DNA from: Macrostomum lignano
Taxonomy: Eukaryota
Length of the DNA stretch: 42,743 nt
NCBI GenBank assembly: GCA_002269645.1
Contig: NIVC01001656.1
Span: 1-42,743 of the forward strand
Direction: 5' to 3'
In this document: piece after piece, positions 1 to 37,629 of the stretch
Layout: every line of letters begins with the position of its first letter
Numbering within the stretch: the stretch's first letter is position 1
Notes under the pieces: model-generated
What the model was told of the DNA's origin: nothing
Seen by the model: only the letters and a program-made list of their open reading frames with translations
The model's database searches: none
Program-made: the position numbers and the translations under genes

Positions 1-26
1 GCATTCCCTATCAGTGTTACTAACAG

Positions 27-1322
27 TGCAACAACGCAGTCACCTGTCAAACTGCCGTTGACCAGCTGCCAAGCCTTCCAAATCTACCAATCATCCAAAG
101 TTGCGGCCGATCGGCAGTAAGCCAACCGGCTACCTCGACCTGGGAATCTGTGAGCATTGCCACCGATGACCAGCCACCGGGTTACACGGTGACAACTCGA
201 GAAGAAACTCTGGATCGTTTGGCGACGCACATTAGAGAGAAAATGGGTGGGTAAAGTTTTATTGATTAAATTCAGCATGACGTCCTTGATTCGTTGATAA
301 AAGTACTCATTCTACTACTCGTAATCGAACTTGTTTCAGGAGAGCTATTCGGCTTTGCGGCGCTAAATCGTCCGAACGTTTTGCACTTCATACTAATTGT
401 GCTGCTGAGTAGTCGTAAATGCCTTTGTCGAATCCTAGTGTTCTGCGACGTCAACGGTCAAGAACGGAGCGGTTCTATTGAGTACTTCAAAATTCTCGAT
501 AGGGAAACCGCTGGGATGCTCTGGCAGAAGGTCAATAGAAGACCAGTGAGCAAGAATGCCTGTTCCGCATTCACGAGGGCAATTAGGTGAGCTAATTGTC
601 GATGTGTCGGAGTGTGTTGGTGTCGGATTTTTGTCGTTGTCGGAGTGTGTTGTTGGAGTGTTTCGGTGTCCGAGTATGTCGGTTTCGGGTGTGTCGGTGT
701 CGGGTGTGTCGGTTTCGAATGTGTTTGTGTTGGGCGTGTTGGTGTCGGGTGTGTCGGTGTCGGTTGTGTCAGTGTCGGATGTGCAGTGTCGGTTGTGTCT
801 GTATCGGGTGTTTTGGTGTCGGGTGTGTTGGTTTCAGATGCCGGGTTTGTTTGTGTCGGTTGTGTTTGTGTCGGTTGTGTTTGTGTCGGGTTGTTTGTGT
901 CGGGTTGTTTGTGTTGGGTGTGTTTGTGTCGGGTGTGTCGGTCTCGGGTGTGTCGGTGTCGGTTGTGTCGGTGTCGGAGTACTTAAGTGTCAATGTGTTG
1001 ACATTTAAAAAATATATTTAAGCCCTACAGTTTTTATTGACTCAAAACGCAGAGATCTTAAATCCTTAGAAATCTCAAGGAAAAAAGACACTGAAAAGAA
1101 ACCTTTGATACAATCAATTGTAAGTTCTGCACATAAATGTAATGCATCGACAAATATTTCTGTAGATTGGCCAAAGCAAAGTTATCTTCTAGCGGTGACT
1201 TTGGCGTCGTGGAAAGCCCTTCAGCGACTAAGTATGCCAACAGCAGAGTGATTCGCTTTGGTCGCAATGGACTGCGGCTGGTTAATGAACTAAGGATGCT
1301 TCTGTCGAGGACTGATGACTGA
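27..1322 (+). CDS. Divergent ETS-domain-like protein, paralog 1 (5' end outside window); exons 27-246, 340-586, 1166-1322
   Basis: The GT-AG model keeps frame (intron phases 1 and 2) and mirrors paralog 2, including a 93-nt intron before the ETS exon and a phase-2 intron inside RAIR. Spliced peptide: ...VLHFILIVLL...FKILDRETAGMLWQKV...FTRAIR...SRVIRFG, which follows the ETS layout (LW, RxxR, terminal xxFG). Confidence 0.65.
600..1005. repeat. Cryptic GT-rich tandem repeat (GTGTCG/GTGTTT-based) in intron of ETS paralog 1
   Basis: Visible runs such as gtgtcggtgtcgggtgtgtcgg; these generate the V/S/G/C-rich ORFs in the track. Confidence 0.85.
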
Positions 1323-2990
1323 ATTATGATTTTATGCAATATAGTATGCTACAGTTCTAAACTTTATCCAGTCGCAATTTCGGTTAAATCTGATTGTTCA
1401 AGTGATAAGTTGAACTAATTTTATTGTTTCTACATGTATTTGTACACACAATCATGTACTGTTTACTTTCGCTTTTAATGAAATCTTAAAAACGTTTATA
1501 GAAAACCGTTTGATGCTTAAATTACGAAACAGAGTATATGCAGAAATCAATTTTTATTTCAATTAATTGTCGAAAATAAAAACAGTGCGCCCCCCATTTG
1601 GTTTGACCAAAAAAGAACATAAAGAAAAAGTCAGTCAATTTCAGTTTTGAAACTTATTTCCGCTGCGTTAAATGGATCACCTCAATACGAAATGCAAAAA
1701 ATTCCAACTCCACCTTCGGGATATGCCTTAGTAGCACCCATGTCACCCTATACTTGATGGCTTCAATTGGTCTTAAAATCTGAATCCTTTGAGAACCTCA
1801 AAATCAACCTCATACGCTCGTAGTGAGCATCATCTTGGGAACGCCTTCTTCATGCTAAGATATTGAACGAGAATGTTTCTCAGCAACTCCTTGTCTCATC
1901 CACAATCATTCCAATTTGATGGTTCACCTTCGATTAGTAAGAAACAAATTATGTAGGAATTTTTAAAGCTTTTTGGCTACACCTCGCAGCTACTTAGAGT
2001 ATTATCGTACATGCTCCATCAGCTCGCTTTGAATAATGAATTGGTGAATACTGTAATTGGCTGGAGAGATGTTGCACAGGCAGTGTCGTAAGTAGATATT
2101 TTTAGCAACGGGCGGATTCTGAGGGAGACTAAATGCTTACACTTTAAAGGAGCGGATGGGGTTGGCCTGAGAGTACGCTCTTCGAAATAAATTCCCACGA
2201 CATTTTCACCCGCTAAAAAGCGCCCTCCCTGCATCCACTGGAGTGAAAAAATAGCTTGTACTCCAGTCGACACAAAAAAACAAAAAATGTGCGTCTCTAA
2301 AGATTTTAAGGCACAAAAAGCTATCTAACAGTAACTATTCTGTCACAATAGCCTCAAACACATTGTATTAATAGATATGACCAACTAGTTCAAAACAATA
2401 TTGCTTCACTAGTGGCAGCCATATTCGAGACACTTGACACTAGACACTAGACTTTGAAAACAGGAAGACGTTATTCAAAAGCAGTGTCTTCTGCACAAAC
2501 ATGCTACTGGATGTTTTTAGTCAATGCCCTACATATGGCAAAGGATTTAAAATACATGTAAATATAGCTGTGGTCCAAAGAAATAGTCGATAAGCATAAA
2601 ATTGATCAAATACTGTTTGTGACCGTTTTTAGGTCCCGTGACTAGAGTTTACAGATTAAATATTGTGGAAGTATTTTGCTTCACTCATAGATTAAGTTTA
2701 ATAATATGCTTGTAAACAGTCTACTAAGAGAGCTAGCTATAGACAAAATGGCAAGACCAAGTACCTTCCCCGGAATTCCCGTGGACTAGCCAGAATCTGG
2801 GCCATGCATACCCAGACGCTACACTGTACAAGTAAGTGTACACTCGCCAACAAGGTACAAACTAAAAGGAACATTTATAAAAGCGGGCAGTGAGCTGCCG
2901 AACCGAGGGGTAGGCTCGCTACGTGCTTCAATAATAAGCATCTCTGAATAAAAGCTTCTAAAATGAGCCAAAAAAACTACAGAGATCAAC

Positions 2991-4206
2991 ATGTCTGATT
3001 TCAATATTATGGAAGTCGATTCGAACGAACTGACTGCTGGCCTTCTACTGGACCACGAGAACAGTTTCAGTTGGCAAAGCTCCGTGTGCCAGCATTCTAC
3101 AGGTCCGGAAATTCCTGCGCCCGGGCCGGAGCAGCAAGTCTGTGTACCTGAGATTGATGACAGCTGTCTGCTAGATCTGCTGCAGGAAATTGTGGACGAA
3201 AACCAACTGCAAGGTGATGAAAACTTTCAGCTGAGCAGCTCGGTTTCGCATGAAAAGTGTGAGACGTTTGGAGAGCGACAATATACTAGCGGACTAGGAG
3301 TTTCTTGTGACAAGGAGACTAAGGAGCTTCTTGACGAGCTGATGGAGGACGCTGATGGAACTGGTCGTGGGAGTGCTACCAACCTGCCGAACGTTCCCAT
3401 GTTTGAGCCGCAGCAGCAGCAGCAGCAGCAGCAGCAGCGGCAAGTTCTACTCAAGGAGATTTCCCAAAGGAAACAACTGCTAGATGAACCGCCAAGTCCA
3501 ACGACTGTGAGCAGCGGCTTCGAGAGCTGCGAATCGCTCCAGCAGTTTTCTTCAGCTCGCGAGGCAGAGATTGACGAAATGGTGGCCTACATCAAGGAAG
3601 TCATAGGTGCGCAAGCTATTTTGAGCTTCTTGGTATTTCGGAAGACATGCGAGGGAATCTACGAGTAGGCTCATTATTTCCTTTTTTAACTTACTGCAGA
3701 AAGAAGCAGCAACTGCAAGCCGGAAGAAATGTCTTCGAAGCTTAAAGTGCACGAGGTCATCCTCACCATTCTGCTTAATTCGACATACGGCGACAAGACA
3801 AAGGATCTTCGACGGATTCTCGCCTTCTGCGACGAGAACGGACGCGAGACGTCTGGCGAATGTCGCCATTTTAAAACGCTCGACACGGAGACCATGGGAC
3901 TGTTGTGGAAAAAAATCAAGGGCAACAAGAAAGCTACCTACGACACGTTTGCCAGAGCGATGAGGTAATGAACCGAACTTCTGGCTTTGCTGCTAATGAG
4001 AAGAATGAAGGATGAATGGATGAACAACAACCATTCTTCCCCGCAGAGTTCGCAGGGAGAAGTCCAAAGGCTATTTCGACTACCTGGACACTGGGAAGCG
4101 CAGCAAAAAGCGAATCTACCGGTTCGGCGAGAAGACCATGGCCGATATGGACCGGATGAAGCGGACGCTGCGGCAAGTGTCCGAGCCGAGGGAATGCTGC
4201 TATTGA
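2991..4206 (+). CDS. Divergent ETS-domain-like transcription factor, paralog 2; exons 2991-3606, 3700-3964, 4047-4206
   Basis: Acidic N-terminus with Q9 (CAG repeat 3411-3437), then KLKVHEVILTILLN...FKTLDTETMGLLWKKIKGNKKATYDTFARAMR|VRR...KRIYRFG, aligning to ETS LWGxxK...YDKLSRALR...LVYKFG. Splice sites AG|GTGCGC, TGCAG|, AG|GTAATG and CGCAG| keep frame to TGA at 4204-4206. Confidence 0.8.
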
Positions 4207-5624
4207 CTAGGCGCTGAACTATCAGCTACGAAACAAAGACAGAAAGCACGAATATTCTTTGTAGATATTTTTTGTAGATATCAATGCGAATCCATGTCTA
4301 ATAGTAGCCATGAATGTATTTATGGTTCGTCATGCTGCTCCACCGAGCAAAACGATCATGTGTACAGATGCATTTCGATTCGGATGTTTTTAATTCCGTA
4401 ATTTATTGTAAATTTCATTTTTTTATAATGCGATATTTATTCAGAAAAAAAGTTTTGTTAAAGACATTTAACAATTGGCCCCATACAAGCGCAGCTGCTT
4501 TTTATGCTTCATCATAGGATCTGTAAAATTTGTAAATACACCAACTATCAATTGCAGTTGAATTCTTGTGTATCTAAGCCTGTCTTTTTTATGCGTTACT
4601 TATCGAAGACTGTCCAAAATTGTCGCAAGCAAAAATTACGAGCGCATATCTGAATTTTGATATACCTTAGTACAACATGCCAATATTGTTGCAATGCACT
4701 CAGTTGTCGGCAGAAAAGGGAACTTTGTGTCGGAAAATCCATGGAAAAACCGTAGAATTGCCATGACAATAAAGCAATTCATGTCTAGCCTAGCGTCTAT
4801 TTTTGTACTTTGTACTTGCTTGCTTCCAGTTGGCGTTCGTAGCTTGAATAAAAAAATAGACCTAAATTTTGAGGGAAATAACTAATGATAACAATAGCTT
4901 TTCATACCATAATTTCGGGATCCTCGGGACATATGCGCAACTATTGCAAAACTGAACTAAGTGTATTTATTAATAATTTAAAATTGATCAGATTTTGTTT
5001 TAGCGATAATTAATTTCATTATCTTCTATAAGCGGCTACTTTAAGTAGGAAAGAGAAGAGAATGTGCTCAAGTGCGAATTTTAATTAAACATTTATGACT
5101 AAAAAGATTCCGATCATGTTTGTAGGGTAATTTATTACGACTACTTACCAATTTTTTTGCGAAATGGAATTTATGCAATTAAATTTAAACTAATTAAAAC
5201 TGAGGCTGTGACAAAACAAGAAAAAATTGATGCTGCTTGTAAACTTCGTCAAAGCTTACAAGACTTGGTTAAAAACTGGTTATAAATGGATACAAGCAGA
5301 TGAATAGGAGTACTGTAAGTAGTTGATAAACATTTTCGGGTATTTTTTGAGACATTTTTAATAAAGTTTTCCGTTCCACCAGAGTTTAAGAGTTCCGAGA
5401 TATGCTTGTAGTTGGGGTCGTCAGGGTTATTTCTAAAGTATCAAATTGTTCAGTCGGGGTCGAGGTGGCATGTAGCTACCATTCAAAAGTACTTTTGTTA
5501 GTCTCCGTTCAAAGGTATACTCGTATTAGTTGTGGTCACTTCAAAGTTAGTTAAAGTAAATTTAGGTAAATTCGTGTTCGCATGAACAGTCTTCCATTTT
5601 TCATCTCAAATAGAGGCGCTTGTC

Positions 5625-8600
5625 TCAGTCCTCTAGCAGCATGCGGTTCTGCTTGGCGCTCTGCAGCTCCTTCCGGGACTCGTGCATCTGACAAGCAGCC
5701 TGAGTCAGGTAGCGCCTCCTCCGCTGCCTGCCCTCCTTCTCTCGCAGCAGATCCAGGATGTCCACCTGGTGGCTGCCGCCGGCAAACAGTCGAGTTATCT
5801 CGGCAACCAGCTTTGTGGCCACGCCGTCGAGCATGTGGCACAGCACTGACATTGGCACCGTGTCCGAGATGCGCTGACAGGCCAGCAGCAGGTAGGCTCT
5901 GGTTCCCAGGCGAATTCGCTCCTCGTTTGATGGGTCGCTTGAGGCGGCTTGTGCTGGCAGCCGCCTGCAAGAAATGGTTAAGGATCTTGTATTAGGATGG
6001 ACTGAATTTTACATTGCTGCACCAACGGGCTCCAGGTCCGAAGGCACCATGCCTATTCAAAGCAATTATTTACTGAGGAATACGATGTGTCGCTAGGAAC
6101 TCCTGCCATTGCGTAGTAACGTAACTCAGTTTTTCCGAAAACTGGCTGTCCTGAGTGAACAAGCGTCGCTCGTGTGCAATAAGCTTAGCCATATCTGTCC
6201 GACACTCAGCCTCTTGGGCTTCGATCGCCTTGACAACAGTTTCTTTCACAAGTAGCAGCAGCCTTGGAAACGCTTTGAAACAATTTTCGGCCAGGTTTTC
6301 AAGCGTTTTAGTAACTTTAGACTGCACGTTATCGAGTAGCCACTTCGCTAGGTCTTCTATTTTTGGCAAATATTCTTCGAATACAATCTTTTGAACAACA
6401 GGGAACACAAATGTGAAAGTCGGAAGCTCGCGTCCTCTTCTAAGCTGCACCTCGTCTGACACACCATTGGGCACTTTTTTCGAGTAGTCAATGATCCAGT
6501 CTGAAATAGAGAGTTTTCCATGGACGTTGTTATATAATGTAATTTGGGCTGCTCTGGTGGCGAGCCAAGGAGCTTAAAACAATATATTTAATCGCCCTGC
6601 CTCTTAGCACGTAGGCGGTGGAGGTCAGGGCCATAGACATGGATATACTAATAAGAGTCGATCCACATCATCTCCCCTTTCAATTCAGTGTCCTTATCAC
6701 TCGACAAAATTAACTTTTGGATGTCCTAGCCTACTGTACTGGAGTCGGGCGGGCGGGATGCCCTTCGTTGCTCTCGAGCTACTTCGAGGTTTCTCCTTGC
6801 TTGGTTGATTGGCCGTCGTAGTACAAGTCGTCTCCGTACGTCTTGTACTTTCGCCGTTTGTCGTCTTTGTCATTTTTTAGTTGTCGGCGGTCAGTGGCAA
6901 TGTTGGCCGTACGTAAATGCCGTTTCTCCGTAGTATTCTGCCGCTCGCCAACTTTACCAGGTAGTCGCGGTGTTTTTCCGACCTCTACCACTACTCCTCT
7001 CCGTTGCCACGGTTTCGTTGTTGGCTCTTGAAGAACTACAGTCGACCCTATTCGGATTCCATCGAGGCTTCTCTTGGACTTGTTTGCTCCACAGCCTCGT
7101 GAACTTCTGATGCTGTGTCCTCCATTTGTTTAATCGTGTTGTACCATTCGGGATTAAAGCTTCTTCGATGAGCAGGAGTGAATCTCTCTTGCTGGGTGTC
7201 CATACAGCATAATAGAAGGAATGCGTCCGTCATACATAGGTGTGTTTCTATAGATAAGTATTCCTTCCGCCATTTTGTCCTTGTTTATGTCATTGTTGCG
7301 ATAGTCCCACGATCCTCTGATGATCTTTTTGGCTGACTTGACTGCCGCTTCGGCTCTCCCGTTGCTTTGGTGGTGGTATGGGGATGAGAATCTGGACTCG
7401 ACTCCCCATCTCTTCAAAAAGTTACCAAATGCGCTGGCCTTGAACTGAGGACCTGAGTCTGACCAGAACAATTCCGGTACAGCTGTCTGACAAAATAGCT
7501 CACGGCACGCGTTAATCAGCTTGTAAACCGGAGCATTTTGTCCGAAGTTCCATATGTTGATCGATCCAGAGTATCCGTCCACTATCATTAGGAATTGCCT
7601 GCCGCGGTGTTCACAAAAGTCAGCATGAACTTCCTGGAAGCACCTTGCTGGTGTAGTTCTCGGCAACATCGGTTCTCTGACCTGACTTGGACGGGTTTCT
7701 TGGCATGCTTTGCATTGCTTTATTGTGTCATCGATCTGACGTTCCATGCTGGGCCAATAGACGACCATTCTTGCTCTTGCTTTGGTCTTAGTAGCACCTT
7801 GGTGACTTGAATGTAGTGTTCTCAAAACTTCTTTTCGCATTTCTTTAGGGATGATACAACGGCATCCATTGAGAACGACTCCGTTTTAGACGACAAGCTT
7901 ATGTCTAATGTGCCAGTACGGTCTTAGATTAACTGGAAGATTAGCTTTATCGTTCGGGAATCCATTCTCTATTACTTGGATAAGCTCTTGCATTTCTGTG
8001 TCCTTCTTTACGTGTTCTTGTATTCTCTTCATGTTAAAGTCAATTTCCCTATCTTCCATTACCATAGTCAACAAATTCACACTACTTAGAGCTTGATTCT
8101 CATCAATCTGATCTTCTTCAGTTGCATTTGCAATCGGAGCTCTTGATAGTGCATCGGCATATACATTGTCTTTACCTCGTACCCATTTTGCTTCATAGTT
8201 GTAGCGATTAAGCTTGGCACGAAGGCGCTGCAACCTCGGGTTTTCGATTTGGTCTAGTTGGTAGCCGTTTAATATCGGAATAAGTGGCTTGTGGTCAGTC
8301 ACGATTTGAAATGAATCGAGTCCTTAAAAAACAAGAGAGTCCATTTTTGCGAAGCCCACACAATTGCTAGAAACTCGAGCTCGATCATAGCATATCGCGT
8401 CTCCGCGTCAGCCAGAAACCGTGATCCTGCCTGAATCATTCGCCAGGCGCCGTCAGGTTGTTGCTGCTTGAGAACAAATCCGAGTCCCTTCAACCTTGAT
8501 GCGTCGGTGTGCAGTGCGGTTGGCTTCGTGGGATCGTAGTATGCCAATGATGGGACTTTAGACAGATGGATTCGTGCCTTATCAAAGGTTTTTTGGTGCT

Positions 8601-11600
8601 CCTCGTTCCAGATGAATGAATTCTTCGCGCTCAGTAGAGGTCTTAATATCGAGGTACATTCTGCGATCGAATCTGTGAATGGTCCTATTTGATTCACTAG
8701 GCCCATAAATGCGCGTAATTCTGTAACATTTGATGGCTCAGGGAATTGAGCAATGGCTGCTGTCATGTCAGGGTCCACCTGATAGCACTTTAGTGTAAGG
8801 ATAAATCCAGCAAACTTTACATTTTTCTTGGCGAAGACAAATTTTTTCTTATTCAATGATATTCCACTCTCGTCACACCGATAAATAAATTCGCGAACAG
8901 CTTGGATGTGGCTTTCGTAGTCGGCGCTTGCGATTATGCAGTCATCCACAATGTGGCGAGTATCTTTCAAGCCCTGTAGAACACTATCCAGTCTCCTGTT
9001 GTAATATTCTGAGATAGAGCTGATCCCGAAAGGTGCCATTCTTAACATGTATGTTCCATAAGGAGTAATAAATGTTGTCAGTGGCATACTGTCTTCGTGG
9101 AGTGGTACTTGATGGGATCCTTTCAATGCATCAACAACTGTAAACCGTGCGTTGGATACATTGGTGCTGGCCACAACTTCCAGTGGTGTTGGTGATTGGT
9201 ATCGAGGTCTCAGAACGTATTTGTTTATCTCTCTAAAATCTACGCAAAGACGAATTTGGTCAGTGCCCTTCTTCGGGGCTACGACTATTGGAGCGCACCA
9301 GGGTGTCGGCTCTGTTATTTTGCAGATAATTTGCTGTCTTTCCAAGGCATCGAGTTCGTTTTTAAGTTTTTCATGCAGTGGCAGTGGTAGCCGGCGTGGC
9401 GTCTTCAAGGAAAATGGGATCGCGTCCTCTTTGAGCACAATCGAAAATTTTTCGCCCTTCATCGGCCGAATTACTCCGTCGAAGACCCTCGGGAATTCTT
9501 GGATCAAATCCAGTTCTGTATGTTTTCTTCCGTCATTCGTCAGAACCTGAGTTATCTGGTTTATCTGACTTGGAAACTCTTTAGGGATGATTCCCAGTTT
9601 TCTACAGCTCTTCCAGGACAGCACTGGCGCGACCAAGTTCTTCAGCACATGAATCCTTGTCGCTGCGTGCTTCCCGTTCAGCGTTATTGTGGCGGAGAAA
9701 TTGCCGTCACTCTTAATGAACTGTCCACTGGCTGATTTAGGAAATATGGCGTCATGCCTTAGTTGTGCAACACGGATGCGGAGCTTTTTGCAATCGCATT
9801 CTCGGATTGCATCGATATTGGATCCCGTATCGGGCATCATTTCCAGCTGCTCCCCATTTATCGAGACTACTACTGTTGGGGTTGCGGGTTCCAGTGTAGC
9901 AACCAAAGTTGAGATTATCGGTGGTCGCCTTTATCCGGATGACCAGTGCTGCGACTGGACCGGCACATGGAACCAAAATGTCCAATGCGACCGCAGTTAA
10001 AGCACTTCTTGTCCTTGGCGGGACATTCTGAACGCTGATGTCGCCCTTTACCACAGGCAGTGCATTTCTTTGCTTCTGGAGTCTTTGATCGAGCCCCACC
10101 TCGCTTTGCTCGCCTCGGAACCATTAAATGCAGCCTCGGACATTCTAACCCATGGATGAATGAATAGAATGGATTGCTATTCTGGCTCTGGCTATTTTCG
10201 TTTTTGACTCTTTTGCATCCGGTTCCCCCCCGTGCCTTTTCATTGGTTGATGATTGCCATAGACAATTTCGCTCGTGTTTTGAAATAAAGTGGGAAGACC
10301 TACGAGCGCTCGATATTCTCTGCAAGTAACTGACATTCTCAGTTCTTTGCGCTTGTGCATCGAAAGAAAGGGGCGAAGGCCGAAAATTGTCTATGGCAAT
10401 CATCAACCAATGAAAAGGCACGGGGGGGAACCGGATGCAAAAGAGTCAAAAACGAAAATAGCCAGAGCCAGAATAGCAATCCATTCTATTCATTCATCCA
10501 TGTTCTAACCACAGAATGTGAATTAAACGGCGTTTATTATTTACTTAATCGCCCTGCCTCTTAGCACGTAGGCGGTGGAGGTCAGGGCCATGAACATGGA
10601 TATACTAATAAGAGTCCATCCACATCAGACGTCAAGCAACGACGAGTTTAGCATAAAGTGAAACATTTTTTAAACTGTGCATGGATTTTGTGCTAAAACA
10701 AAAGCAAGATTAAAATCGACGATTACGATACAAGCTTGTTACAAGTATGTGTTACAAGTATTTACAACTAAAATCTATATTTCGCATAGAAGCGCCCCGT
10801 GCGCCAGGAAACTCGTAATCAATAAACAACTCACCAGGCTGACTCCTGCTCACAGAGTAGCCAAAGCTGGAACAATTAGTCAGACAGCTGCTGTACAGAC
10901 TGCTGGAGCTGCCCGTGGCGAATGCGTCCCGCTCATCTTCTGGACTGACCGTGGCGGCGTGTACTTTTGAGGCAAACTGCTGCAGCTTGCGCATCAGGTA
11001 GGCTCTCTTGTCGCTGTCTGTCTCGCACAGGCTGTCCTCCAGGTCTTTCAGCTCGTCTTCGTAATCCTTCAGCTTGCTCTGTGAGAAATAATTTTTTTAA
11101 TTTAGTTCAGTTTGCGAGCTGTCAAATCAAAACGATTACGTGTACATTCGGTTGACCCTAAGCACGCATGCGCACATGAAAACAAGCGCCAAATAGAAAT
11201 CTGACCTGAAAGCATTCAGCCACATCAAGTCTTATATATTACGTAATGAAAAAGTAAACTGCTATTCTGTTTGAATGCATATCCGCTGACTAAGGGCAGC
11301 AAACTTCTTTAACCAGAGGACAAGAGGAGAGAGGAAAAAAGAGAAGACCTGATAAGAGAGATACGATCAGAAGAGACAGGATTAGTCGATTAGAGGTGAT
11401 AGGAGGGAGAGAGTAAAAAAGAAAAGAGAGGAAAGAGAGAGGAAAGAGAAAATAGGGGAGAGAGGAAAGAAGAGGGGAGAGTGGAGAGAAGAGGGGAGAG
11501 TGAAGAGAAGAGGGGAGTGAGGAGAAAAGAGCTGAGAAAATACATTAACCTTGAGTGGGCGGGATCGCATATAAAGTATTTAAAGTATTTAAAGGCCGGA

Positions 11601-14082
11601 TGGAAAGGCTTTGAGGACTGAAGTTCGCCAACTCCCCCGTGGAGCTGACTTTCTCAGTCGGCTTACCTTCAGACTCTCCTCCAGAGTCTCAATGCCCGCC
11701 GCCACTGCCTTGAACAACTCATTTGTCAGCTTCTCTGCCAGCGTCTTTGTGCCAACAATATCCTTTGGCAGCTGGCTGAAGTGCGGATCGTTTCTGAAAT
11801 AATCCTCCTCGATTTTGGCCACCTCGCTCAGACTAATGTTGTTCCTGAGCTCCTTGGGGCTGCGGCATTTCACCATGACAAAGCCTTTGTGCAGTCGCAC
11901 TCTGCCTTGGTTGTTGACGATGGCTTTGATGTCCTCCTCGCTGCCAGGGTTGGTCAGGTCCGGGCAAGTCAGGACTCCGATCGTCCTGGTGCCCCCTGGG
12001 TCCACCTGTTTGGCTAGAGCAATGGCCTCCACTGTCTCGATGTCCACGCTGCAGGGTACAACAACCAGGATGATCACCTGGTCCTGGCTGATGTAAGACA
12101 GAATCAGCTGCTTGGTGACCTCGTTGATCTTCGGATTCTTCTCAGAGTACCTGGCAATGCCGGGCAGGTCAACCAGGGTGAGGTCGGACACATCCGCGCT
12201 CTCAATGGTCAGGTCGATCTGCTCCGTAGACACGCCGTTCGAGTCGCCAGTGATTTCGTTTTGTACTTTGCGCACCATTTCGTCTACTTCACATTTTTTC
12301 GATATTTTACGCTCGACGTGCTCGCCCTTGCGATTTTGGTAGCTGTTGTCAGGGGTTGGAAGGGTGTCTTGTCAGAAAAGGCTCTTAGGAGAGCAGGAAA
12401 CGACACTTGTGAAATTACAGCTGGTTAACTTTGAAGACATTGGAATGACTTTTGAAATACTTTAACCCATGTATCTTTGTAATTTTGCAGCCTGGAGTAC
12501 TGGAAGAACGTTTTCTCGACGAAGGCAAATGATGTGCTGCCCAGCAGCAGTTTACAAAGGGGATGTGAACTTAAGAGTAAAAATGGAGTTCGAAACATTC
12601 GGTCCTGATTTTTCTACGCCAATCCCTTCATTTGGAGCCAAAAAGCTGCCGTCATGCGAAAACCCGAACACTTTAGCATTTGGGGATCTCTATGGGGAGA
12701 AATGGTTGTGGGGGAGCTTTGCACCTTTGACACGATATAAATGTGCGAAAATGATGTTTACCACCCTCCGTCTCAAAACTTCGGGTTAACCTCCGCTTCG
12801 TCGAGGTAGAAATCGTCGGTCTAATATGTGTGATACAAACCCCCCTTGACGAGAGCTGGGGTGGGGAAGATAACATAAACATTATTAAGAAACAACATAA
12901 TGGGGGCATTAAATAACATTACTATCGCTCCTATTCTTCCTACAAACATGAAAAGTGCCAAAAGGGGAGCGTATATTATGGTCATCTCGTTTTTTAAGCG
13001 TTTGAAGCTCCAAATGAAGGCATTGGCGTAGAGAAACCGGGACCCAATGCTTCATGCTCCATTCTGGAACCTGAAGTTCACATGAATTCTTCCCCATTAA
13101 TCCCATTTCTCCTCATAGGGATCCTCAAATGCTAAAGTGGTCGGGTTTTCGGCATAACGGCAGCTGTTTGGCTCCAAATGAAGGGATTAGCGTAGAGAAA
13201 CCAGGACAGAATGTTTCGGGCTCCATTTTTGAATCCCAAGTTCACATCCCATTTACTTTTCAACTTGACTTTTTATTTCAATCTAAAGTGCCTGCTAGTT
13301 TTCAGCAGAAAGGAAGCTAGTTCATTTCGGGCCTGTGCGGCCACATTTATTTGGGACAAATATTGGCCAGTTGGTTGTCCGTGTGGGGCCCCTGTGCACC
13401 TTGTGTGAGTGTGTGGGAGTTGCGTGCCTGTGTACATTACTGGCGCTCTTGTATGTACTCAGGGGTCAGTAGAAAGGGCAGAATAGCCTCATTGCTGGTA
13501 TTTCATATCATGCAGTGTAATTGAGAAAATGTTTTTTAGCAAGACAAATACCCGCGCTGTCAAATCTGTCAAAATTTGCTAATATTTGCAAGATATTTTT
13601 TATGTGCATTTAATGTCAATTCAGAAAGGAGTTCTAAGAAGGTGAATTGATAGAACTATAAAAATGCTCACCTAATCCTACCAGTCCAGTCTCCAGTTGG
13701 CTTTGAGCGCATGCTCAGCTGCAGCGGGCAGCGAGTCACAATTCCGGTACCGCGCGGCAAGTCCACGCCCGAGATGGCCTCCAGCACGCTGGATTTGCCT
13801 ACCGATTGGTCGCCCACAACGGCTACTGTGGGCAGGCGGAGCTCATTTTGTAGGCCGTGCGACCGGAGACGATCGATGCTGTTCAGCACTGGCCGGATTC
13901 GCTCGCGATACTGCTGACTGAGCGCTGGAGTGAACGTCTTGGAGGCGTCTGCAGCAGCGCTTAGCAACACAGTCTCAGTGGCATCGGGGCTCTTGACCTG
14001 TTTCGCCGGGGTCGGGCCATCGGAGGACTTGTGCTGCTGTGGGAGAAAAGGTAGTATTGTTCGTACTGCTAGTAGTAGTAAC

Positions 14083-14126
<44 letters not shown>

Positions 14127-14244
14127 CAGTGGAAAAGTAGTAGTCTTTTACTGAAATGTAGCGCGGTAAATTTTATGACTGAGCACTACAAAAATGATTT
14201 ACCCGCTTGTTTGACGACAAATTTGGCGAACTCCGCGATGACAT
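5625..14244 (-). CDS. Mx-like dynamin-family GTPase, copy A (~697 aa); exons 14244-14203, 14036-13672, 12342-11667, 11078-10835, 6500-6074, 5964-5625
   Basis: [31 protein letters not shown] (TRCPL is Mx-type), [21 protein letters not shown] and a C-terminal GED (AYL...RISDTVPM...LLRE); no PH or proline-rich domain. Six exons total 2094 nt in frame, with GT-AG junctions. Confidence 0.88.
6528..6670 (-). repeat. 3' LTR (143 bp) of the gypsy element
   Basis: Bounded by the PPT and the TSD; 6588-6670 matches 10545-10627 with 3 mismatches in 83 nt. Confidence 0.85.
7154..9906 (-). pseudogene. pol: Gypsy pol: aspartic protease, RT, RNase H and integrase, disrupted
   Basis: PDTGS (protease), HIVDDCII (RT), LHTDAS and TDHKPL (RNase H), HQG...CKAC (integrase Zn finger), D-D-E in VHADF/WSDSG/GRAEAAV. 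Frameshift near 8320 and in-frame TAA at 7886-7888. Confidence 0.9.
9915..10140 (-). pseudogene. gag: Gag nucleocapsid remnant with two CCHC zinc knuckles
   Basis: [14 protein letters not shown] and [14 protein letters not shown] (CX2CX4HX4C); the upstream gag region is missing. Confidence 0.85.
10151..10502. mobile_element. MITE (352 bp) with ~121-bp terminal inverted repeats, nested in the gypsy element
   Basis: 10151-10271 is the reverse complement of 10381-10502 (one indel); termini CATGG...CCATG; 8-bp TSD TTCTAACC at 10143-10150 and 10503-10510. Confidence 0.88.
10545..10627 (-). repeat. 5' LTR remnant (83 bp)
   Basis: Direct repeat of 6588-6670; the rest of the LTR, the PBS and most of gag appear deleted. 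Confidence 0.8.
11291..11640 (+). mobile_element. hAT-like MITE relic with GA-rich core in Mx-A intron 3
   Basis: Ends ggcagcaaactt ... gaagttcgccaactc resemble GGCAAACTT...AAGTTTGCC-type hAT MITE ends; related copies at 18057-18268 and 21200-21485. Confidence 0.45.
12560..13253. repeat. Long imperfect inverted repeat (arms ~12560-12710 and ~13100-13253), probable foldback/MITE, in Mx-A intron 2
   Basis: The reverse complement of 12585-12705 aligns to 13103-13220 at roughly 85% by eye; a further direct copy of part of the arm lies at ~13006-13083. Not present at the equivalent position of Mx-B. Confidence 0.7.
13310..13500 (+). mobile_element. Degenerate tRNA-derived SINE (family 2) in Mx-A intron 2
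   Basis: Body ttgtgtgagtgtgt...tgcgtgcctgtgtaca..actggcgctc is shared with 19279-19530 and with the reverse complement of 25250-25535. Confidence 0.5.
14070..14128. repeat. (TAG)n microsatellite in Mx-A intron 1
   Basis: Direct reading; a degenerate counterpart is in Mx-B intron 1 (~20115-20175). Confidence 0.9.
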
Positions 14245-14540
14245 TTCAGGTTTGTATAGTACGTCTGCTATACAGAATCCAAAAAATGAGTTGCGTTTTC
14301 GAAACTCAAAGTCAGAGAAAACAAATTGCCGGCAGGGCAAAATATTTTGAATAAGAACAACGGGCAGTACAGTGCATATTCACACTCCCATTTAAGCACT
14401 GATACACCACTGTCCGTTGGAATTTCTACAGGGAACGATAATGATAAACTGTACACCCTTTTCATCCATGTACATACGCTCGTATAATGAACTGCGCCAA
14501 AAATTTCCAAAAGATTCCTGCAGATGTGCGTGTGAACTAT

Positions 14541-14549
14541 TTCCTGGAA
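14541..14549. promoter_or_regulatory. GAS/STAT-type palindrome TTCCTGGAA ~300 bp upstream of the Mx-A ATG
   Basis: Exact match to TTCYNRGAA; function untested. Confidence 0.4.
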
Positions 14550-14654
14550 ACCTGTTTTTTCTGTGCTTTTTTTCTCGCAGTAAGAGCTAGTTTCATGTGC
14601 ACCCTTCGTACTACTGACATGTTACGAAGGGTGGCATCAGTATGCCTAAGTGTA

Positions 14655-14806
<152 letters not shown>

Positions 14807-16371
14807 ACACGTAAATAGCACATGCAGCGCATGGCAAAGCTTCAGCAGCTCCCATCCATTTCAGCCAGAGATCAAAGGCGAGGCTGCAATTTGACCTGGA
14901 CGGTTGACAAGCGGAGACGGCCGGCCGGCGAATTCTTAATGAGCCCAGCGCGGAGGCCGCTCCTGAGGAGGAGCCGCAGTGCAGGCCCGGGACCGACGCC
15001 CAGCCCCGACCTGGCGTGGCAACTGAGGGGTGGATGCGTTGGCCGGCCCGCACAGAAGGACAGTAAACGAACGCAGAACTGAGCTCTCCCCTGACGCTCT
15101 AACGCAACCAGAGCAACTCCGCAGTCTAACCGTCCAGCCCCCGCCCCCGTAGTAACGGGCCATGTCTAGTGCTGTTTTAATTGCATGCGCTGTTTGTGTA
15201 AACCCTGCCGTCGTTAGGAAAGCGGCTCCCCATCTCATCGACGGCAAGGGATGAAATTGTAGAAAACTCATAAATCCTAAAGAAGCCCTAAGAGGCACGC
15301 TAATCCTTTCGGTTTTGAAGTTTAAAATGTGTAGACAAAGAGAAGCATCTCCGGTAGTTGTCTTTTGTTCCACCGCTGTCTGATGGCAGAAGATAACCGG
15401 TGTTTAAAACATCGAAAACATCGCGTTATGCATGCATTGTTGCTGTGTATTTTGTTATTGGCAGAAAGACGAACTTTGCATCGGACATTTCTGTGAATAT
15501 AACAGCAATTCATATCTGGTCGCTATTTTTGTTCTGCGTATTTGCTTTAGGTTGGCATTTGAAGCTTGAAATGAAAGCTAAACACATGTGTCGGAAGAAA
15601 TAACAATGATATCCAAACACAAATAGCTTTCCCTAATTTAATATAATTTTAGGACACTGCAGTTGCAATAGGAAAATTTGCTCAACTCGAAATTTTAACA
15701 AAGTGTATTTAATAACAAGTTAAATTTGTTTGCTTTAGAGATTATTCCTTTTCATGACTTCTTGAGGCAAGTATTGCAATAGTTTACGAAGAAAAGAGAA
15801 CAAAACATGCTCAAGTGCGAATTTTAATAAATAGATTACGATTAGAGACGTGTTTAACCATGCTTTTAGATCATTAAAACTATCATAAAACTATCATAAA
15901 GATCATACAAACATAAAAACTTTTAGATTATTAAGATTTATTGTGAAATGGAATTCCTGCATTAAATACTAATAAAAACTGATCGTGCTGCAATACAATT
16001 AAAAAATTGAAGCTGCTTAAAAACTCCGCCCAAGCTTACAAGACTTGGTTAAAAAAATGGTTATAAATGGATACAGGCAGATGAGTACTGTAAGTAGTTG
16101 ATAAACATTTTCGGGTATTTTTTGAGACATTTCTAATAAAGTTTTCCGTTCCTGCAGAGTTGAAGAGTTCCGAGATACGCTTGTAGTTGGGGTCGTCAGG
16201 GTTATTTCTAAAGTATCAAATTGTTCAGTCGGGGTCGAGGTGGCATGTAGCTACCATTCAAAAGTACTTTTGTTAGTCTCCGTTCAAAGGTCACTTCAAA
16301 GATAGTTAAAATAAATTTAGGTAAATTCGTGTTCGCATGAACAGTCTTCCATTTTTCATCTCAAATATGTC

Positions 16372-19300
16372 TCAGTCCTCCAGCAGCATGCGGTTCTGCT
16401 TGGCGCTCTGCAGCTCCTTCCGGGACTCGTGCATCTGACAAGCAGCCTGAGTCAGGTAGCGCCTCCTCCGCTGCCTGCCCTCCTTCTCTCGCAGCAGATC
16501 CAGGATGTCCACCTGGTGGCTGGCGCCGGCAAACAGTCGGGTTATCTCGGCAACCAGCTTTGTGGCCACGCCGTCGAGCATGTGGCACAGCACGGACATT
16601 GGCACCGTGTCCGAGATGCGCTGACAGGCCAGCAGCAGGTAGGCTTTGGTTCCCAGGCGAATTTGCTCCTCATGTGACGGCTCGCTTGAGGCTCGGCTCA
16701 CTTGAGGCTCGGCTCTCTTGAAGCCCCCTTGAGACGCCCTTGTGGTTGGGCTTGCTTGAGGCTCGCAAGAGAATCGGATCGGCTGTGATGCTGCCGGGGC
16801 TCCGAAACCCGAAAAAAAGGTTGGGCTGAAAAACGGAACCTCCTCTTTTACATTGGATATATAATAACTATTCCATTTGTAGTGTTTTTAGATCCAAATG
16901 TGAGAGGCATAGCCAGGAGTTTCGTAGTAGCTAGGGACGCTTCTTTGAGTGCGAGGAACAAGGGGCGTCAGCTCCTAAAATCCTTCGTTAAACGCCCAAT
17001 TAAAGCAGTTACTTACGGAGGAACAGGTTGCTTAGCCAACTCCTTTTGTTGCTCTGTAACGTAACGCAGTTTTTCCGAAAACTGGCTGTCCTGAGTGAAC
17101 AAGCGACGCTCGTGTGCAATCAGCTTAGCCAGGTCTGCACGACACTCAGCCTCTTGTGCTTCGATCGCCTTGACAACAGTTTCTTTCACAAGTAGCAGCA
17201 GCCTTGGAAACGCTTTGAAACAATTTTCGGCCAGGTTTTCAAGCGTTTTAGTAACTTGAGACTGCACCTCACCGAGTAGCCACTTCGCCAGGTATTCTAT
17301 TTTTGGCAAATATTCTTCGAATACAATCTTCTGAACAACAGGGAACACAAATGTGAAAGTCGGAAGCTCGCGTCCTCTTCTAAGCTGCACCTCGTCGGAC
17401 ACACCATTGGGCACTTTTTTTGAGTAGTCAATGATCCAGGCTGAAATAAAATGTTCGCCATGGACGTCAAGCAACGTCGAGTTCGCGTGGCCAGTTTAGC
17501 ATAAAGAATGAAATTTTATAATGTGCATGGACTTTGTGCTAAAAAAGTCGCCGATTATGATACATGGTTGTTACAAGTATTTACAACTAAAATCTATATT
17601 TCGCATAGAAGCGCCCCGTGCGCCAGGAAACTCGTAATCAATAAACAACTCACCAGGCTGGCTCCTGCTCACAGAGTAGCCAAAGCTGGAACAATTAGTC
17701 AGACAGCTGCTGTACAGACTGCTGGAGCTGCCCGTGGCGAATGCGTCCCGCTCATCTTCTGGACTGGCCGTGGCGGCGTGTACTTTTGAGGCAAACTGCT
17801 GCAGCTTGCGCATCAGGTAGGCTCTCTTGTCGCTGTCGGTCTCGCACAGGCTGTCCTCCAGGTCTTTCAGCTCCTCTTCGTAGTCCTTCAGCTTGCTCTG
17901 TGAGAAATAAATTTTTAAATTTAGTTCAGTTTGCGAGCTGTCAAATCAAAACGATTACGTGTACATTCGGTTGACCCTAAGCACGCATGCGCACATGAAA
18001 ACAAGCGCCAAATAGAAATCTGACCTGAAAGCATTCAGCCACATCAAGTCTTATATCAGAAGAGACAGGGTTAGTCGATTAGAGGTGATAGGAGGGAGTA
18101 AAAAAGAAAAGAGAGGGGAGAGAGAGGAAAGAGAAAATATGGGAGAGAGGAGAAAAGAGCTGAGAAAATACATAAACCTTGAGTGGGCGGGATCGCATAT
18201 AAAGTATTTAAAGTATTTAAAGGCCGGATGGAAAGGCTTTGAGGACCGAAGTTCGCCAACTCCCCCGTGGAGCTGACTTTCTCAGTTGGCTTACCTTCAG
18301 ACTCTCCTCCAGAGTCTCAATGCCCGCCGCCACTGCCTTGAACAACTCATTTGTCAGCTTCTCTGCCAGCGTCTTTGTGCCAACAATATCCTTTGGCAGC
18401 TGGCTGAAGTGCGGATCGTTTCTGAAATAATCCTCCTCGATTTTGGCCACCTCGCTCAGACTAATGTTGTTCCTGAGCTCCTTGGGGCTGCGGCATTTCA
18501 CCATGACAAAGCCTTTGTGCAGTCGCACTCTGCCTTGGTTGTTGACGATGGCTTTGATGTCCTCCTCGCTGCCAGGGTTGGTCAGGTCCGGGCAAGTCAG
18601 GACTCCGATCGTCCTGGTGCCCCTTGGGTCCACCTGTTTGGCTAGAGCAATGGCCTCCACTGTCTCGATGTCCACGCTGCAGGGTACAACAACCAGGATG
18701 ATCACCTGGTCCTGGCTGATGTAAGACAGAATCAGCTGCTTGGTGACCTCGTTGATCTTCGGATTCTTCTCAGAGTACCTGGCAATGCCGGGCAGGTCAA
18801 CCAGGGTGAGGTCGGACACATCCGCGCTCTCAATGGTCAGGTCGATCTGCTCCGTAGATACGCCGTTCGAGTCGCCAGTGATTTCGTTTTGTACTTTGCG
18901 CACCATTTCGTCGACTTCACATTTTTTCGATATTTCACGCTCGACGTGCTCGCCCTTGCGATTTTGGTAGCTGTTGTCGGGGGTTTGTAGGTAGGAAATC
19001 ACACTTTCTAACTAAAAAGTCAGCTAGTGTTGAAATACTTTAAACAGTGAATATTCCACTTCTTGTAATGTTGCAGCCTGGAACACAGCACACGAAGAAC
19101 GTCTTTTGGACGAAGTCGAGATTTTCTGCGCTCCAAGCTCCAAAATAACAGCCGCGAAATTTTATAGTTTAAGGCTTTCCAAAAGCAGAACTTTTAAAGT
19201 TCACTTTTAAACATTGATTTTTAGCTTTCAACCCGATTTTTCAGCGAGTTTTCAGCAGAAAGCAAAGTACTTCATAGCGGGGCTGAGCAGCTCAGCATTA

Positions 19301-20246
19301 AACGCTCTGACGATCCCTGGCTCGATTCTGTGTGAGCCAACATTCATTTGGGACAAAAGTTGACCGGTGGGTTGTCACTTGTCAGTTAAGGGCTGCATGT
19401 ACACCCTATGTGAGTGTGTGTATGAGTTGCGTGCCTGTGTACATCACTGGCGCTCTAGTATGTGTTTAGGGGTCAGTGGAAAAGGGCAAAATTGCCTCAT
19501 CGCTGGTTGTGGGACGACGTTGCACCAGATTATTTCATTTCCTGCAGCGTCAATCGAGAACAAGAGAATGTTTTTAGCAGGATGAATAGCCGTGCCAGTA
19601 AGTTTAAAAAAATTTTCTAATATTTATGAGTAATTTTTTTCTTCTTACTTAAATTTTCGGTCAGAAAGGAGTTCTAAGAAGGTGAATTTATAGAACTATA
19701 AAAATGCTCACCTAATCCTGCCAGTCCAGTCTCCAGTCGGCTTTGAGCGCATGCTCAGCTGCAGCGGGCAGCGAGTCACAATGCCGGTACCGCGCGGCAA
19801 GTCCACGCCCGAGATGGCCTCCAGCACGCTGGATTTGCCTACCGATTGGTCGCCCACAACGGCTACTGTGGGCAGGCGGAGCTCATTTTGTAGGCCGTGC
19901 GACCGGAGACGATCGATGCTGTTCAGCACTGGCCGGATTCGCTCGCGATACTGCTGACTGAGCGCTGGAGTGAACGTCTTGGAGGCGTCTGCAGCAGCGT
20001 TTAGCGACACAGTCTCAGTGGCATCAGGGCTCTTGACCTGTTTCGCCGGGGTCGAGCCATTAGAGGACTTGTGCTGCTGTGGGAGTAGAAGTATGTTCGT
20101 ACTTTCGGTAAAAGTAATGGTAGTAGTATTAATAATAGTAATAATAGCAGTAGTAGTAGTAGAAGTAGTAGTAATACCCTCTTGTTTGACGACGAACTTG
20201 ACGTTGACGAACTTGACGAATGGTGTGACGAACTCTGCGATGACAT
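16372..20246 (-). CDS. Mx-like dynamin-family GTPase, copy B (~743 aa); exons 20246-20178, 20076-19712, 18970-18295, 17897-17654, 17440-17017, 16825-16372
   Basis: Same motifs and intron phases as copy A; exons 2-4 have identical lengths (365, 676, 244 nt); total 2232 nt in frame ending in TGA. Confidence 0.9.
18057..18268 (+). mobile_element. 5'-truncated copy of the hAT-like GA-rich MITE in Mx-B intron 3
   Basis: Paralogous to 11291-11640 with a deletion of the left end. Confidence 0.45.
19279..19530 (+). mobile_element. tRNA-derived SINE (family 2) in Mx-B intron 2
   Basis: A-box-like agcagctcagc and B-box-like ggctcgattct, followed by a body homologous to 25250-25535 (reverse complement). 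Confidence 0.6.
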
Positions 20247-20575
20247 TTGAGGTTGATACGAGCTATTATGTCAACTGTACAGAATCGCAAAACTTAATAG
20301 AGTTTTTGAAATTCAAAGTTAAATTAGACGAAATACTGAGTGGGCAGAATGTATAAACCCTAAAAATGCAGTGAGAATAAGAACAGTGGGCAGGAAAGCG
20401 TATATATACACTCGCATTTGTGCACTGAAACATCATTGCACGTTTTTTTCTAGAGTGTACGTTTTTGATCAGCGTATTTTTTATCAGTATAGCTACACTA
20501 TACACTCCGCTCATAAGTGTACATGCGCGAAAGAGCGTAGATCTAAAATGTGCATACCAAGAAAAGCTCTCAAAT

Positions 20576-20926
20576 TTCCTAGAAATAAATTTCTGCAGAT
20601 TTCCACAAACTGTTTCGTACGAGCGTAAAATTGTTTTTTTCGTTGTACTTTTCCCGCAGTAAGAGCTCTACTAATGACATGTTGCTTGCGTGATGTTTTA
20701 AAGCAAGTTGTTACGAGCGTAGTTTTGATAAAAAGTGAATTCGCGTTTAGTGTATCAACTTACGATAGTCAAACGTCTGATGCAGTTGAAAGCTTAGCAA
20801 GTACACTTTGATATCTAACTTACATGGTAGGCAAAAATTTCCAAGAAATTCCAACAGAAGTACTCTTATTCTGATTCCTAGAAATCTCTGCAATATTAAT
20901 GTGATATAAGCGTCCTTTTCTTGGAA
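20576..20926. promoter_or_regulatory. Cluster of four GAS/STAT-type palindromes upstream of Mx-B
   Basis: TTCCTAGAA 20576-20584, TTCCAAGAA 20839-20847, TTCCTAGAA 20875-20883, TTCTTGGAA 20918-20926; each is followed by AT. Confidence 0.55.
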
Positions 20927-21199
20927 ATTGTGTCCTAGTCTAGGTTCTGCTCGTTCCGTGGTTTTTTGTATGCTATGAGGAACTAACATGGTGGTATTCA
21001 TTTTTCACGAGTGGTGAAGCCACGAGTGACTTACATTAATCATCGTCCATGACAAAACCATATGCACAACGCAGCACAAGCACAAGAATGTTTTTTCAAC
21101 ACATTTTCATACTTTACGTATTATTTCTAGATACAATGTGCAACTGTTACGATCTAAAAAATGGAACGTTTGAATTTTCAAATTTCAGCACTTTCTCTC

Positions 21200-21485
21200 G
21201 AGTCAGAGTTGGTCAGCAAACTTCGGCCCGCGGGCCACATGTGACCCACCAAGCCTCTCTATCGGGCCCTGGAGTACTAAGGCTTGCTTAATTAGCTTAT
21301 GTCTCAACTCAGCTCTCTTCTCTTTCCAATCTTCTCTCTTCTCTAGCTCTCCCCCCCCTATCCTTTTATCTTTTCTCTCGCCTCTTATCTCTCCTCCAAT
21401 CCTTCTCCTTAAGTCTCGTATCTGGCTCGCAGGCATGAGCTGGATTTTTTATCTGGGCCTTAAGGTAAAAAAGTTTGCCTGGAGC
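21200..21485 (-). mobile_element. hAT-like MITE relic with CT-rich core
   Basis: ggtcagcaaacttcggcccgcgggcc ... aaaaagtttgcc ends; same family as the 11291-11640 element, in opposite orientation. Confidence 0.5.
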
Positions 21486-21734
21486 CGTGATGTCGACCAG
21501 CACCTCCTGAATAGGCCTTTTCATTAGTAGATTTGAATGTCAGAAAACGGTTTGGCTCGTCAAGTATTTATTCATAAACTTTTTAACTGCCCCAGGTGTT
21601 TTTATTTGATGCGCAATTCAACGAAAAAAACGTACAATTGCAATCCACTTTAGACTGGATGCAGACCCGCAATTAAAAGCGTCGTATTGGCAGCTCAAAC
21701 ACAACAACTAATGTTACTCCAAGAGCTGTTCAGG

Positions 21735-22524
21735 ATGGCAATGCAAGGCTTACAAATCACATTGCTAATTCAGTTTATACTCTGTGATCAGTTTTTGACA
21801 GCTGGCTTCAACGAGCAAGAGTTTCACTCGATTCACGGCAGTTTGTGCGTAAAAGCATCTATACGGAGATTCACTCAAATTGCAATTCAACAAACAAAAT
21901 TAACAAAATTAAATGTGCGCGGCTCTGTGCACCAGAAACCGGCGCTGCCAGGCGTTCAGCCTGGCTGACGGTCCGTGCCAGCTGTTCGTGTTTGACAAGT
22001 GCAGCAAGTCGGTGAGGGACTGCGGCTGCTCCAGGAGAGGCCGGGTGTTTGTGAAGCAGCAGCCGGGACTCGAGGCGGGCGCGCTGTGTCCGTCTTGCTA
22101 CGGAGACGACCTGTGCGGAGCAAAGTACAGGCTGCACTTCGGTTCAAGGAACTGGTCGATGAGTAGACAGAAATGTGAGTCGGAGAGCGGTCTGGTGATC
22201 ATGGCGGATGTTACTGACACCGCAGAGATGAGCAGAGTGAACATCATGTACAAGACATATTGCCCTGGAGGTCAGTTCTGGCTTGGTGGGTACCAAAAAC
22301 CTGGCAGTCTGGAGCCTGGAGAAGGTTGGCACTGGGTCGCCTGCAACATTTCCTTGGACAAAAGTCTGTGGAGCTCTCGCCAGCCAGACAACTATGGAAG
22401 TGAAAATTCTGTCGCAAGATTTGGAACTGCTTTTCCTGGTCTAGTGGACTTCAATGAAGCTGCAAGTGATTTTGCTTCTAAAGGATTTGGAGTGCTGTGC
22501 GAATGTATTTCTCCCTTTAACTAA
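21735..22524 (+). CDS. Secreted PAN/Apple-like plus C-type lectin protein with one frameshift at ~21912 (pseudogene or sequencing error)
   Basis: Hydrophobic leader MAMQGLQITLLIQFILC, PAN-like CAALCTRNRRCQAF..C, and CTLD motifs NWSMSRQKC, FWLGG, WHW, QPDN, VLCEC. Removing one A at 21911-21913 joins the two ORFs; no AG acceptor is available to splice around it. Confidence 0.7.

Positions 22525-35904: not shown

Positions 35905-37629
<1,725 letters not shown>

Follow-up and report, generated by a model that had tools for sequence, protein, structure and literature searches.

Two unannotated Mx genes with divergent linkers beside lectin-like and ETS-like genes in Macrostomum lignano

Mx proteins are far older than interferon, and in MxA, loop L4 is the determinant of antiviral target specificity. 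To our knowledge, interferon is absent from flatworms. ADAR knockdown in the planarian Schmidtea raises a set of double-stranded RNA (dsRNA) response genes that includes mx1 and stat5 (PMC8797187). In Macrostomum lignano, a free-living flatworm and a hidden polyploid (PMC10468722), at least six proteins fall in the Mx clade of a published phylogeny (Langley and colleagues, PMC11326297). Here, we describe contig NIVC01001656.1 of the M. lignano assembly GCA_002269645.1, the whole of which (42,743 bp) was analyzed and is referred to as the window. It carries two Mx genes, Mx-A and Mx-B, in tandem on the minus strand, preceded by two ETS-like genes (ETS-1 and ETS-2) and followed by a gene with PAN/apple and C-type-lectin-like domains, all three on the plus strand (Table 1). 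The initial annotation of this locus had listed the same five genes in this order and orientation, and all five exist; it had also read them as a co-regulated defense module. We instead consider it probable that the contig is an unremarkable, gene-rich part of the genome in which three unrelated, lineage-specific or expanded families adjoin each other. With this locus, the Mx family already described in M. lignano gains two unannotated members.

The predicted Mx-A and Mx-B proteins belong to the Mx clade and are nearer to Mx than to dynamin, Drp1, or OPA1. Pfam profiles matched Dynamin_N (3e-41 in Mx-A and 1e-41 in Mx-B), Dynamin_M (1e-36 and 1e-35, respectively; the match spans profile positions 4-284 of 287), and, above its cut-off, GED, while a PH domain had no Pfam match in either protein. 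Among structures in the PDB, Mx-B matches human MxB (284 bits, E 2e-83) and MxA (280 bits, E 5e-82) ahead of dynamin-1 (149 bits, 1e-42), Drp1 (137 bits), and OPA1 (79 bits). The closest database matches outside flatworms are all Mx proteins, from fish, amphibian, mammal, acorn worm (a hemichordate), and abalone, at 43-48% identity, and the abalone and acorn-worm proteins, members of the same clade, stand among the top matches at 43-45%. The copies in the window are 47-54% identical to P0002 and P0003, two M. lignano paralogs that are annotated, and differ from these in being missing from the annotation. With complete gene models, this domain set, and the matches to MxB and MxA structures, the earlier description of the pair as two Mx-like GTPases holds.

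Dynamin-type G1, G3, and G4 motifs were located in the G domain of the Mx proteins. In other Mx proteins, the G4 motif is TKPD. Here, it is TCPD (Mx-B residue ~270, at window position ~18520, and ~11890 in Mx-A), a form common to all M. lignano Mx paralogs seen, the annotated ones included.

Both Mx models were built by hand from conserved GT-AG junctions and are intact across six exons (Table 1). The first large exon has no in-frame ATG in either gene, and a small upstream exon, conserved in both, has an ATG with an open frame that leads to a phase-0 donor. Alternatively, the Mx mRNAs may obtain their ATG from the spliced leader. The spliced leader of M. lignano terminates in ATG (PMC8629364), and an in-frame acceptor, CCCACAG/CAG, is present in both Mx genes, but the conserved mini-exon with its own ATG and phase-0 donor is the preferred start. 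A (TAG)20 tract is located just upstream of the acceptor of the second exon of Mx-A (14070-14130).

Self-comparison of the window identified collinear duplicate blocks that span the two genes (Table 1), and by this alignment, Mx-A and Mx-B are a young tandem duplicate pair. Overall, synonymous divergence (dS) between the two is 0.069, with a ratio of nonsynonymous to synonymous divergence (dN/dS) of 0.40; the main GTPase exon is nearly identical (dS 0.013). Most of the amino-acid differences, along with a 37-codon indel, are concentrated in the linker between the Middle domain and GED. By Pfam limits, this linker is 63 amino acids long in Mx-B and 31 in Mx-A (coded within ~5920-6100). Across the 40 linker codons that can be aligned, dS is 0.56 and dN is 0.31, and Mx-B has 37 codons in addition. 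Structural alignments to MxA and MxB stop at the linker, whose position we take to be that of loop L4 in vertebrate Mx and of the PH domain in dynamin; the proposed equivalence of linker and L4 is positional only. Positive selection between Mx-A and Mx-B was considered and rejected, as dN/dS is below 1 everywhere and 0.55 in the linker. The additional residues of the Mx-B linker (16636-16760) are encoded by short tandem repeats with a GAGCC-TCAAG-type unit and include repeated EPQ/SRAS peptide motifs.

Compared with vertebrate Mx1/Mx2 (MxA/MxB), which are their best structural-sequence match, the flatworm proteins share a layout of dynamin-type G domain, Middle domain, and GED, with PH absent from both. 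In both cases, the genes form a tandem pair, and the paralogs diverge most at the linker in the L4 position. They differ in that the flatworm pair is only ~47% identical to the vertebrate proteins, has TCPD as G4, and is associated with sites of the gamma-activated site (GAS) type and not with an interferon-stimulated response element (ISRE). The linker of Mx-B is also approximately twice as long.

Judged by their substitution patterns and reading frames, purifying selection acts on both Mx copies, which are intact; dN/dS outside the linker is 0.2-0.4. This bears on an alternative in which part of the locus is in decay: the lectin would be a pseudogene, and family turnover would have left Mx-A, Mx-B, or both as silent relics. 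Several features fit such decay. These include the broken frame of the lectin, the retroelement within an Mx-A intron, and the altered G4 motif. Moreover, Mx-A, Mx-B, and the lectin have no entry in the gene annotation of the assembly, which calls ETS-2 as the sole gene in 1-14206. In sister contig NIVC01001310.1, the Mx-A copy lacks one base in the P-loop codons (L001, 20960-20972); its exon 2 has 364 rather than 365 bases and is shifted in frame, and the copy is either dead or affected by an assembly error. However, both Mx frames in the window are open over six exons with canonical splice sites, the constraint outside the linker is not that of relics, and TCPD is present in all M. lignano Mx paralogs, annotated ones among them. 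Single-base indels are, in addition, common errors of long-read assemblies. We therefore regard decay of the locus as very improbable and retain the reading of two intact Mx genes.

The retroelement is a degraded element of the Ty3/gypsy type with long terminal repeats (LTRs), 4.1 kb in length, and lies in intron 4 of Mx-A. Pfam domains zf-CCHC, RVT_1, RT_RNaseH_2, Integrase_H2C2, and rve were matched, and the order of gag zinc knuckle, protease, reverse transcriptase, RNase H, and integrase follows the Ty3/gypsy plan. Its reading frames are split among at least four fragments, and short direct terminal repeats are present at 6582-6670 and 10539-10627. The insertion is absent from Mx-B but present in the sister contig, with 99% identity. 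The gag end has a perfect inverted duplication of 119 bases (10151-10269 and 10384-10502), where the sister contig has a different and longer sequence; this may be a long-read assembly artifact or a real rearrangement.

Mx-B and the lectin are arranged head-to-head, their ATGs 1,488 bp apart, and the spacer is enriched in GAS-type motifs. Across the window, TTCN3GAA was found 26 times versus 15.6 expected. From exon 2 of Mx-B to the lectin ATG (20077-21734; 1,658 bp), there are five sites versus a mean of 0.69 in local dinucleotide shuffles (P ~0.001), and no other stretch of 1,658 bp in the window exceeds five. For the stricter pattern TTCYNRGAA, four sites were found in this region versus 0.17 expected. 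The GAS-type motifs reported earlier in the shared intergenic region are thus confirmed by count. Four of the five sites are of the form WTTCYWRGAAAT, a 12-base palindrome-like sequence, and are located 330-672 bp from the ATG of Mx-B and 809-1,151 bp from that of the lectin; the remaining site, nearest to the lectin, has the weakest form. Neither TTCN2GAA nor TTCN4GAA occurs in the spacer, and the ISRE pattern GAAANNGAAAST had 0 matches. Upstream of Mx-A, a related site is at 14541, 297 bp from the ATG. The upstream regions of Mx-A and Mx-B are homologous over ~600 bp, and each has one GAS-type site ~300-330 bp before the ATG. A perfect (TCTG)38 tract (14655-14806) bounds this promoter homology.

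The gene across the spacer is predicted to be a Macrostomum-restricted, secreted-type gene with PAN and C-type-lectin-like domains. Its main open reading frame (21913-22524; 203 aa) is in a different frame from the signal-like hydrophobic start at the ATG and the first half of PAN, including the first PAN cysteine. The break was inferred by comparison with paralogs. No GT donor was found in the A-rich stretch between the two frames, and the break reflects either an error of the long-read assembly or a true lesion. The earlier description of a secreted C-type lectin head-to-head with Mx-B was correct as to gene and position, with PAN and C-type-lectin-like domain (CTLD) profile matches of the family, but not as to an intact secreted frame.

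Four relatives of the lectin (53-58% identity) were found, all from M. lignano or a read assembly. The family profile matches codakine (2.9e-5), mosGCTL-1 (5e-5), and a PAN domain (3.9e-4) in the PDB. Pfam Lectin_C had no match in the window lectin, and the paralogs score 16.8-18.5 bits relative to a cut-off of 22.6; an AlphaFold model from the five-sequence alignment had a mean predicted local distance difference test (pLDDT) score of 32, too poor for a fold search. In C-type lectins, QPD is a galactose-type and EPN or EPT a mannose-type sugar-binding motif. The window lectin has QPD (22380-22400), and all four paralogs have EPN or EPT. Like C-type lectins with an N-terminal PAN (codakine, mosGCTL-1, and microneme protein 5), the flatworm family has CTLD and PAN profile matches and the WLGG and QPD/EPN motifs. 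Unlike them, it lacks the WND motif, the frame in the window is broken, and relatives were not found outside M. lignano.

Given the joint rise of mx1 and stat5 in the planarian, an inducible unit of Mx-B and the lectin is plausible. In its full form, the proposal is that Mx-B and the lectin, possibly with Mx-A, are a co-regulated defense unit in which a STAT-type factor acts on the spacer sites and switches both genes on upon infection. The excess of motifs and their palindrome-like form, the head-to-head arrangement, the comparable site upstream of Mx-A, the QPD motif of the lectin, and the joint upregulation of planarian stat5 and mx1 are all consistent with such a unit. On the other hand, four of the five sites are nearer to Mx-B than to the lectin, the site on the lectin side is the weakest, and the lectin frame is broken. 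Two other Mx paralogs are without such an upstream cluster (in P0002 and P0003, no strict TTCYNRGAA was found within 10 kb upstream), and ISRE is absent. Furthermore, a GGAA core is inside every GAS-type site, making STAT only one candidate binder; ETS, NFAT/Rel, or BCL6-type factors would fit the motif as well. Taken together, we find the full proposal unlikely, if conceivable. The idea of a co-regulated defense module is supported in part for Mx-B and the lectin, which have a divergent spacer with a significant cluster of TTCN3GAA, and unsupported for the ETS-like genes, as nothing links these to defense.

We conclude from profile comparisons that the ETS-like genes are probably a small, fast-evolving, and lineage-restricted offshoot of the ETS family. 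ETS-1 and ETS-2 are paralogs with exon phases and a C-terminal domain in common; ETS-1 is cut at its 5' end by the contig start, and complete homologs of it are present in the sister contigs. Taken singly, the proteins match poorly. ETS-2 scored 21.3 bits against Pfam Ets (PF00178) as annotated and 26.6 bits with an alternative in-frame acceptor, relative to a cut-off of 26.9, and ETS-1 had no Pfam Ets match. A profile of five family members matched ETS domains in five of five PDB matches, weakly (Elf-3, E 0.048), and an AlphaFold model of ETS-2 from the five-sequence alignment was too poor for a fold search (mean pLDDT 39). The assignment is weak protein by protein and is supported transitively. 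An exhaustive search of 1.84 billion proteins with the family profile yielded only 14 relatives, one of which, P0137, was reached at E 4.8e-5 and itself scores 57 bits against Pfam Ets, with two further relatives just over the Pfam cut-off. On this transitive support, the claim of two divergent ETS-like transcription factors is sustained. As in ETS factors, of which Elf-3, EHF, and Elf-1 are the nearest structures, the match extends over helices 2 and 3 and the wing, and two helix-3 arginines (R291 and R294) do not vary among the five aligned sequences and line up with RAMR of Elf-3. In contrast to ETS factors, the flatworm family is below or just at the Pfam cut-off, has no PNT domain, and has lost the YYY motif after helix 3.

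Comparisons to other contigs place ETS-1 and ETS-2 as the final two members of a tandem array that comprises four or more highly divergent ETS-domain genes. In the sister contigs, the array has one gene on the minus strand and three on the plus strand, followed by a convergent Mx gene. The fourth ETS-like gene (387 aa), at the head of the array on the minus strand (L005 4703-7744 and L006 4688-7742 in the sister contigs), is more divergent, and a ATTTCTTGGAAAT palindrome is within its span. In the window, an intron of ETS-1 has a GT-rich 15-bp repeat (604-977).

The convergent order of ETS-like and Mx genes is found in two other contigs only, NIVC01001310.1 and NIVC01001050.1. Both are 97-98% identical to the window and have the same retroelement insertion, and they are therefore homeologous or allelic copies. 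The gene order is inherited via near-identical copies and does not amount to independent conservation. At the older Mx paralogs P0002 and P0003, the neighbors are XRN, a beta-lactamase-fold protein, RabGAP, and one unknown gene, and no ETS-like or lectin sequence was found within 10 kb. Conserved linkage of the genes, which the initial annotation had named as a check in relatives, is therefore limited to these two near-identical M. lignano contigs and is absent at the P0002 and P0003 loci.

These comparisons also bear on an account in which the whole block is one module and the ETS-like factors regulate Mx and the lectin via the GGAA cores of TTCC...GGAA sites. The order of two ETS-like genes facing the Mx genes recurs across three contigs, each GAS-type site has a TTCC/GGAA core, and the arginine pair of the ETS helix that contacts DNA is invariant in the family. 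But the three contigs are near-identical copies with the retroelement insertion in common at 99% identity, the older Mx paralogs have no ETS-like neighbor, and the ETS-like domain is very divergent. We give this account almost no credence and prefer to see the ETS-like genes as neighbors of the Mx genes by chance.

Elsewhere on the contig, a plus-strand gene (35905-36182, 37121-37253, and 37363-37629) encodes a ubiquitin-conjugating enzyme E2 of the UBE2D/E type whose N-terminal extension is rich in Ser and Gln, and the first intron of this gene has a (TAGA)208 microsatellite. On the minus strand, a GC-rich block (53-56% GC) contains an open frame of 424 aa (29945-31219) with RNase H and a zinc-binding tail of the reverse-transcriptase type; this frame is probably a non-LTR retrotransposon fragment. 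A 48-bp minisatellite (40044-41181) has 23.7 copies with 97% identity, and a family of 28-bp repeats occurs at two places 4 kb apart (37798-38103 and 42150-42360). Scans of the window with Rfam and for tRNAs found no RNA genes.

Table 1. Coordinates of genes, duplicate blocks, and other features in the window
Feature	Position	Strand	Description
ETS-1	24-1322	+	exons 24-246, 340-586, 1166-1322; 5' end cut by contig start
ETS-2	2991-4206	+	exons 2991-3606, 3700-3964, 4047-4206; BOX15_Mlig011372g2 (P0121, 346 aa), 95% match
Mx-A	5625-14244	-	697 aa, six exons, intact GT-AG model
Mx-A exons	14244-14203, 14036-13672, 12342-11667, 11078-10835, 6500-6074, 5964-5625	-	
Retroelement	6533-10627	-	degraded Ty3/gypsy-type LTR element, 4.1 kb, in Mx-A intron 4 (between exons 11078-10835 and 6500-6074)
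Mx-B	16372-20246	-	743 aa, six exons, intact GT-AG model
Mx-B exons	20246-20178, 20076-19712, 18970-18295, 17897-17654, 17440-17017, 16825-16372	-	
Mx-B Middle-GED linker DNA	16636-17034	-	residues 579-641; 191-bp intron between the two final exons included
Duplicate block (A; B)	5153-5945; 15937-16692		90% identity
Duplicate block (A; B)	6116-6527; 17056-17467		94% identity
Duplicate block (A; B)	10750-11237; 17569-18056		98.6% identity
Duplicate block (A; B)	11457-12357; 18091-18985		97% identity
Duplicate block (A; B)	13333-14130; 19328-20166		84% identity
Divergent spacer between Mx-B and lectin ATGs	20247-21734		1,488 bp
TTCN3GAA sites in spacer	20576, 20839, 20875, 20918, 21617		
PAN/apple and C-type-lectin-like gene	21735-22524	+	single exon, one frame break at ~21880-21912

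Our preferred explanation is that the ETS-like genes are chance neighbors and that the Mx genes have a function of their own. Planarian mx1, likewise a member of the Mx clade, is inducible in the dsRNA response, and its rise with stat5 makes an inducible role for flatworm Mx reasonable. By analogy, Mx is a reasonable candidate for a defense effector in a flatworm, and both Mx proteins may be inducible effectors of dsRNA or virus responses. Duplication followed by divergence of the linker would widen the range of targets recognized by Mx. The Mx promoters carry palindromic TTCN3GAA elements potentially usable by a STAT-type factor, and the lectin may share an enhancer with Mx-B simply through its proximity of 1.5 kb.

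Several observations weigh against this explanation. Because they are unannotated, the Mx genes and the lectin may be silent; a literature search on the gene identifiers had no matches, and in a paper on the M. lignano microbiome, we found no relevant expression data. With TCPD in place of TKPD, normal binding of GTP is not assured. The GAS-type sites of Mx-A and Mx-B are at neighboring but nonhomologous positions. A 55-bp module with a GAS-type site is repeated, and since some of the five spacer sites are in this duplicated module, they are not fully independent. Lastly, the lectin is broken as assembled, and an intact secreted protein was not found.

A more far-reaching possibility is that an animal without interferon drives the Mx-lectin pair and the sister Mx via STAT and GAS and that the differing linkers in the L4 position recognize different viruses. 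We consider this decidedly unlikely. If true, both the logic of interferon-stimulated genes and the arms-race surface of Mx would predate interferon. Should the genes be silent or uninduced, the locus would be mere turnover of gene families in a polyploid genome. The locus is a concrete test case for how invertebrate Mx genes are switched on, in an animal open to transgenesis. It offers two intact and unannotated Mx paralogs that differ mainly in the linker at the L4 position, promoters with countable GAS-type sites, and a divergent lectin as a built-in second read-out.

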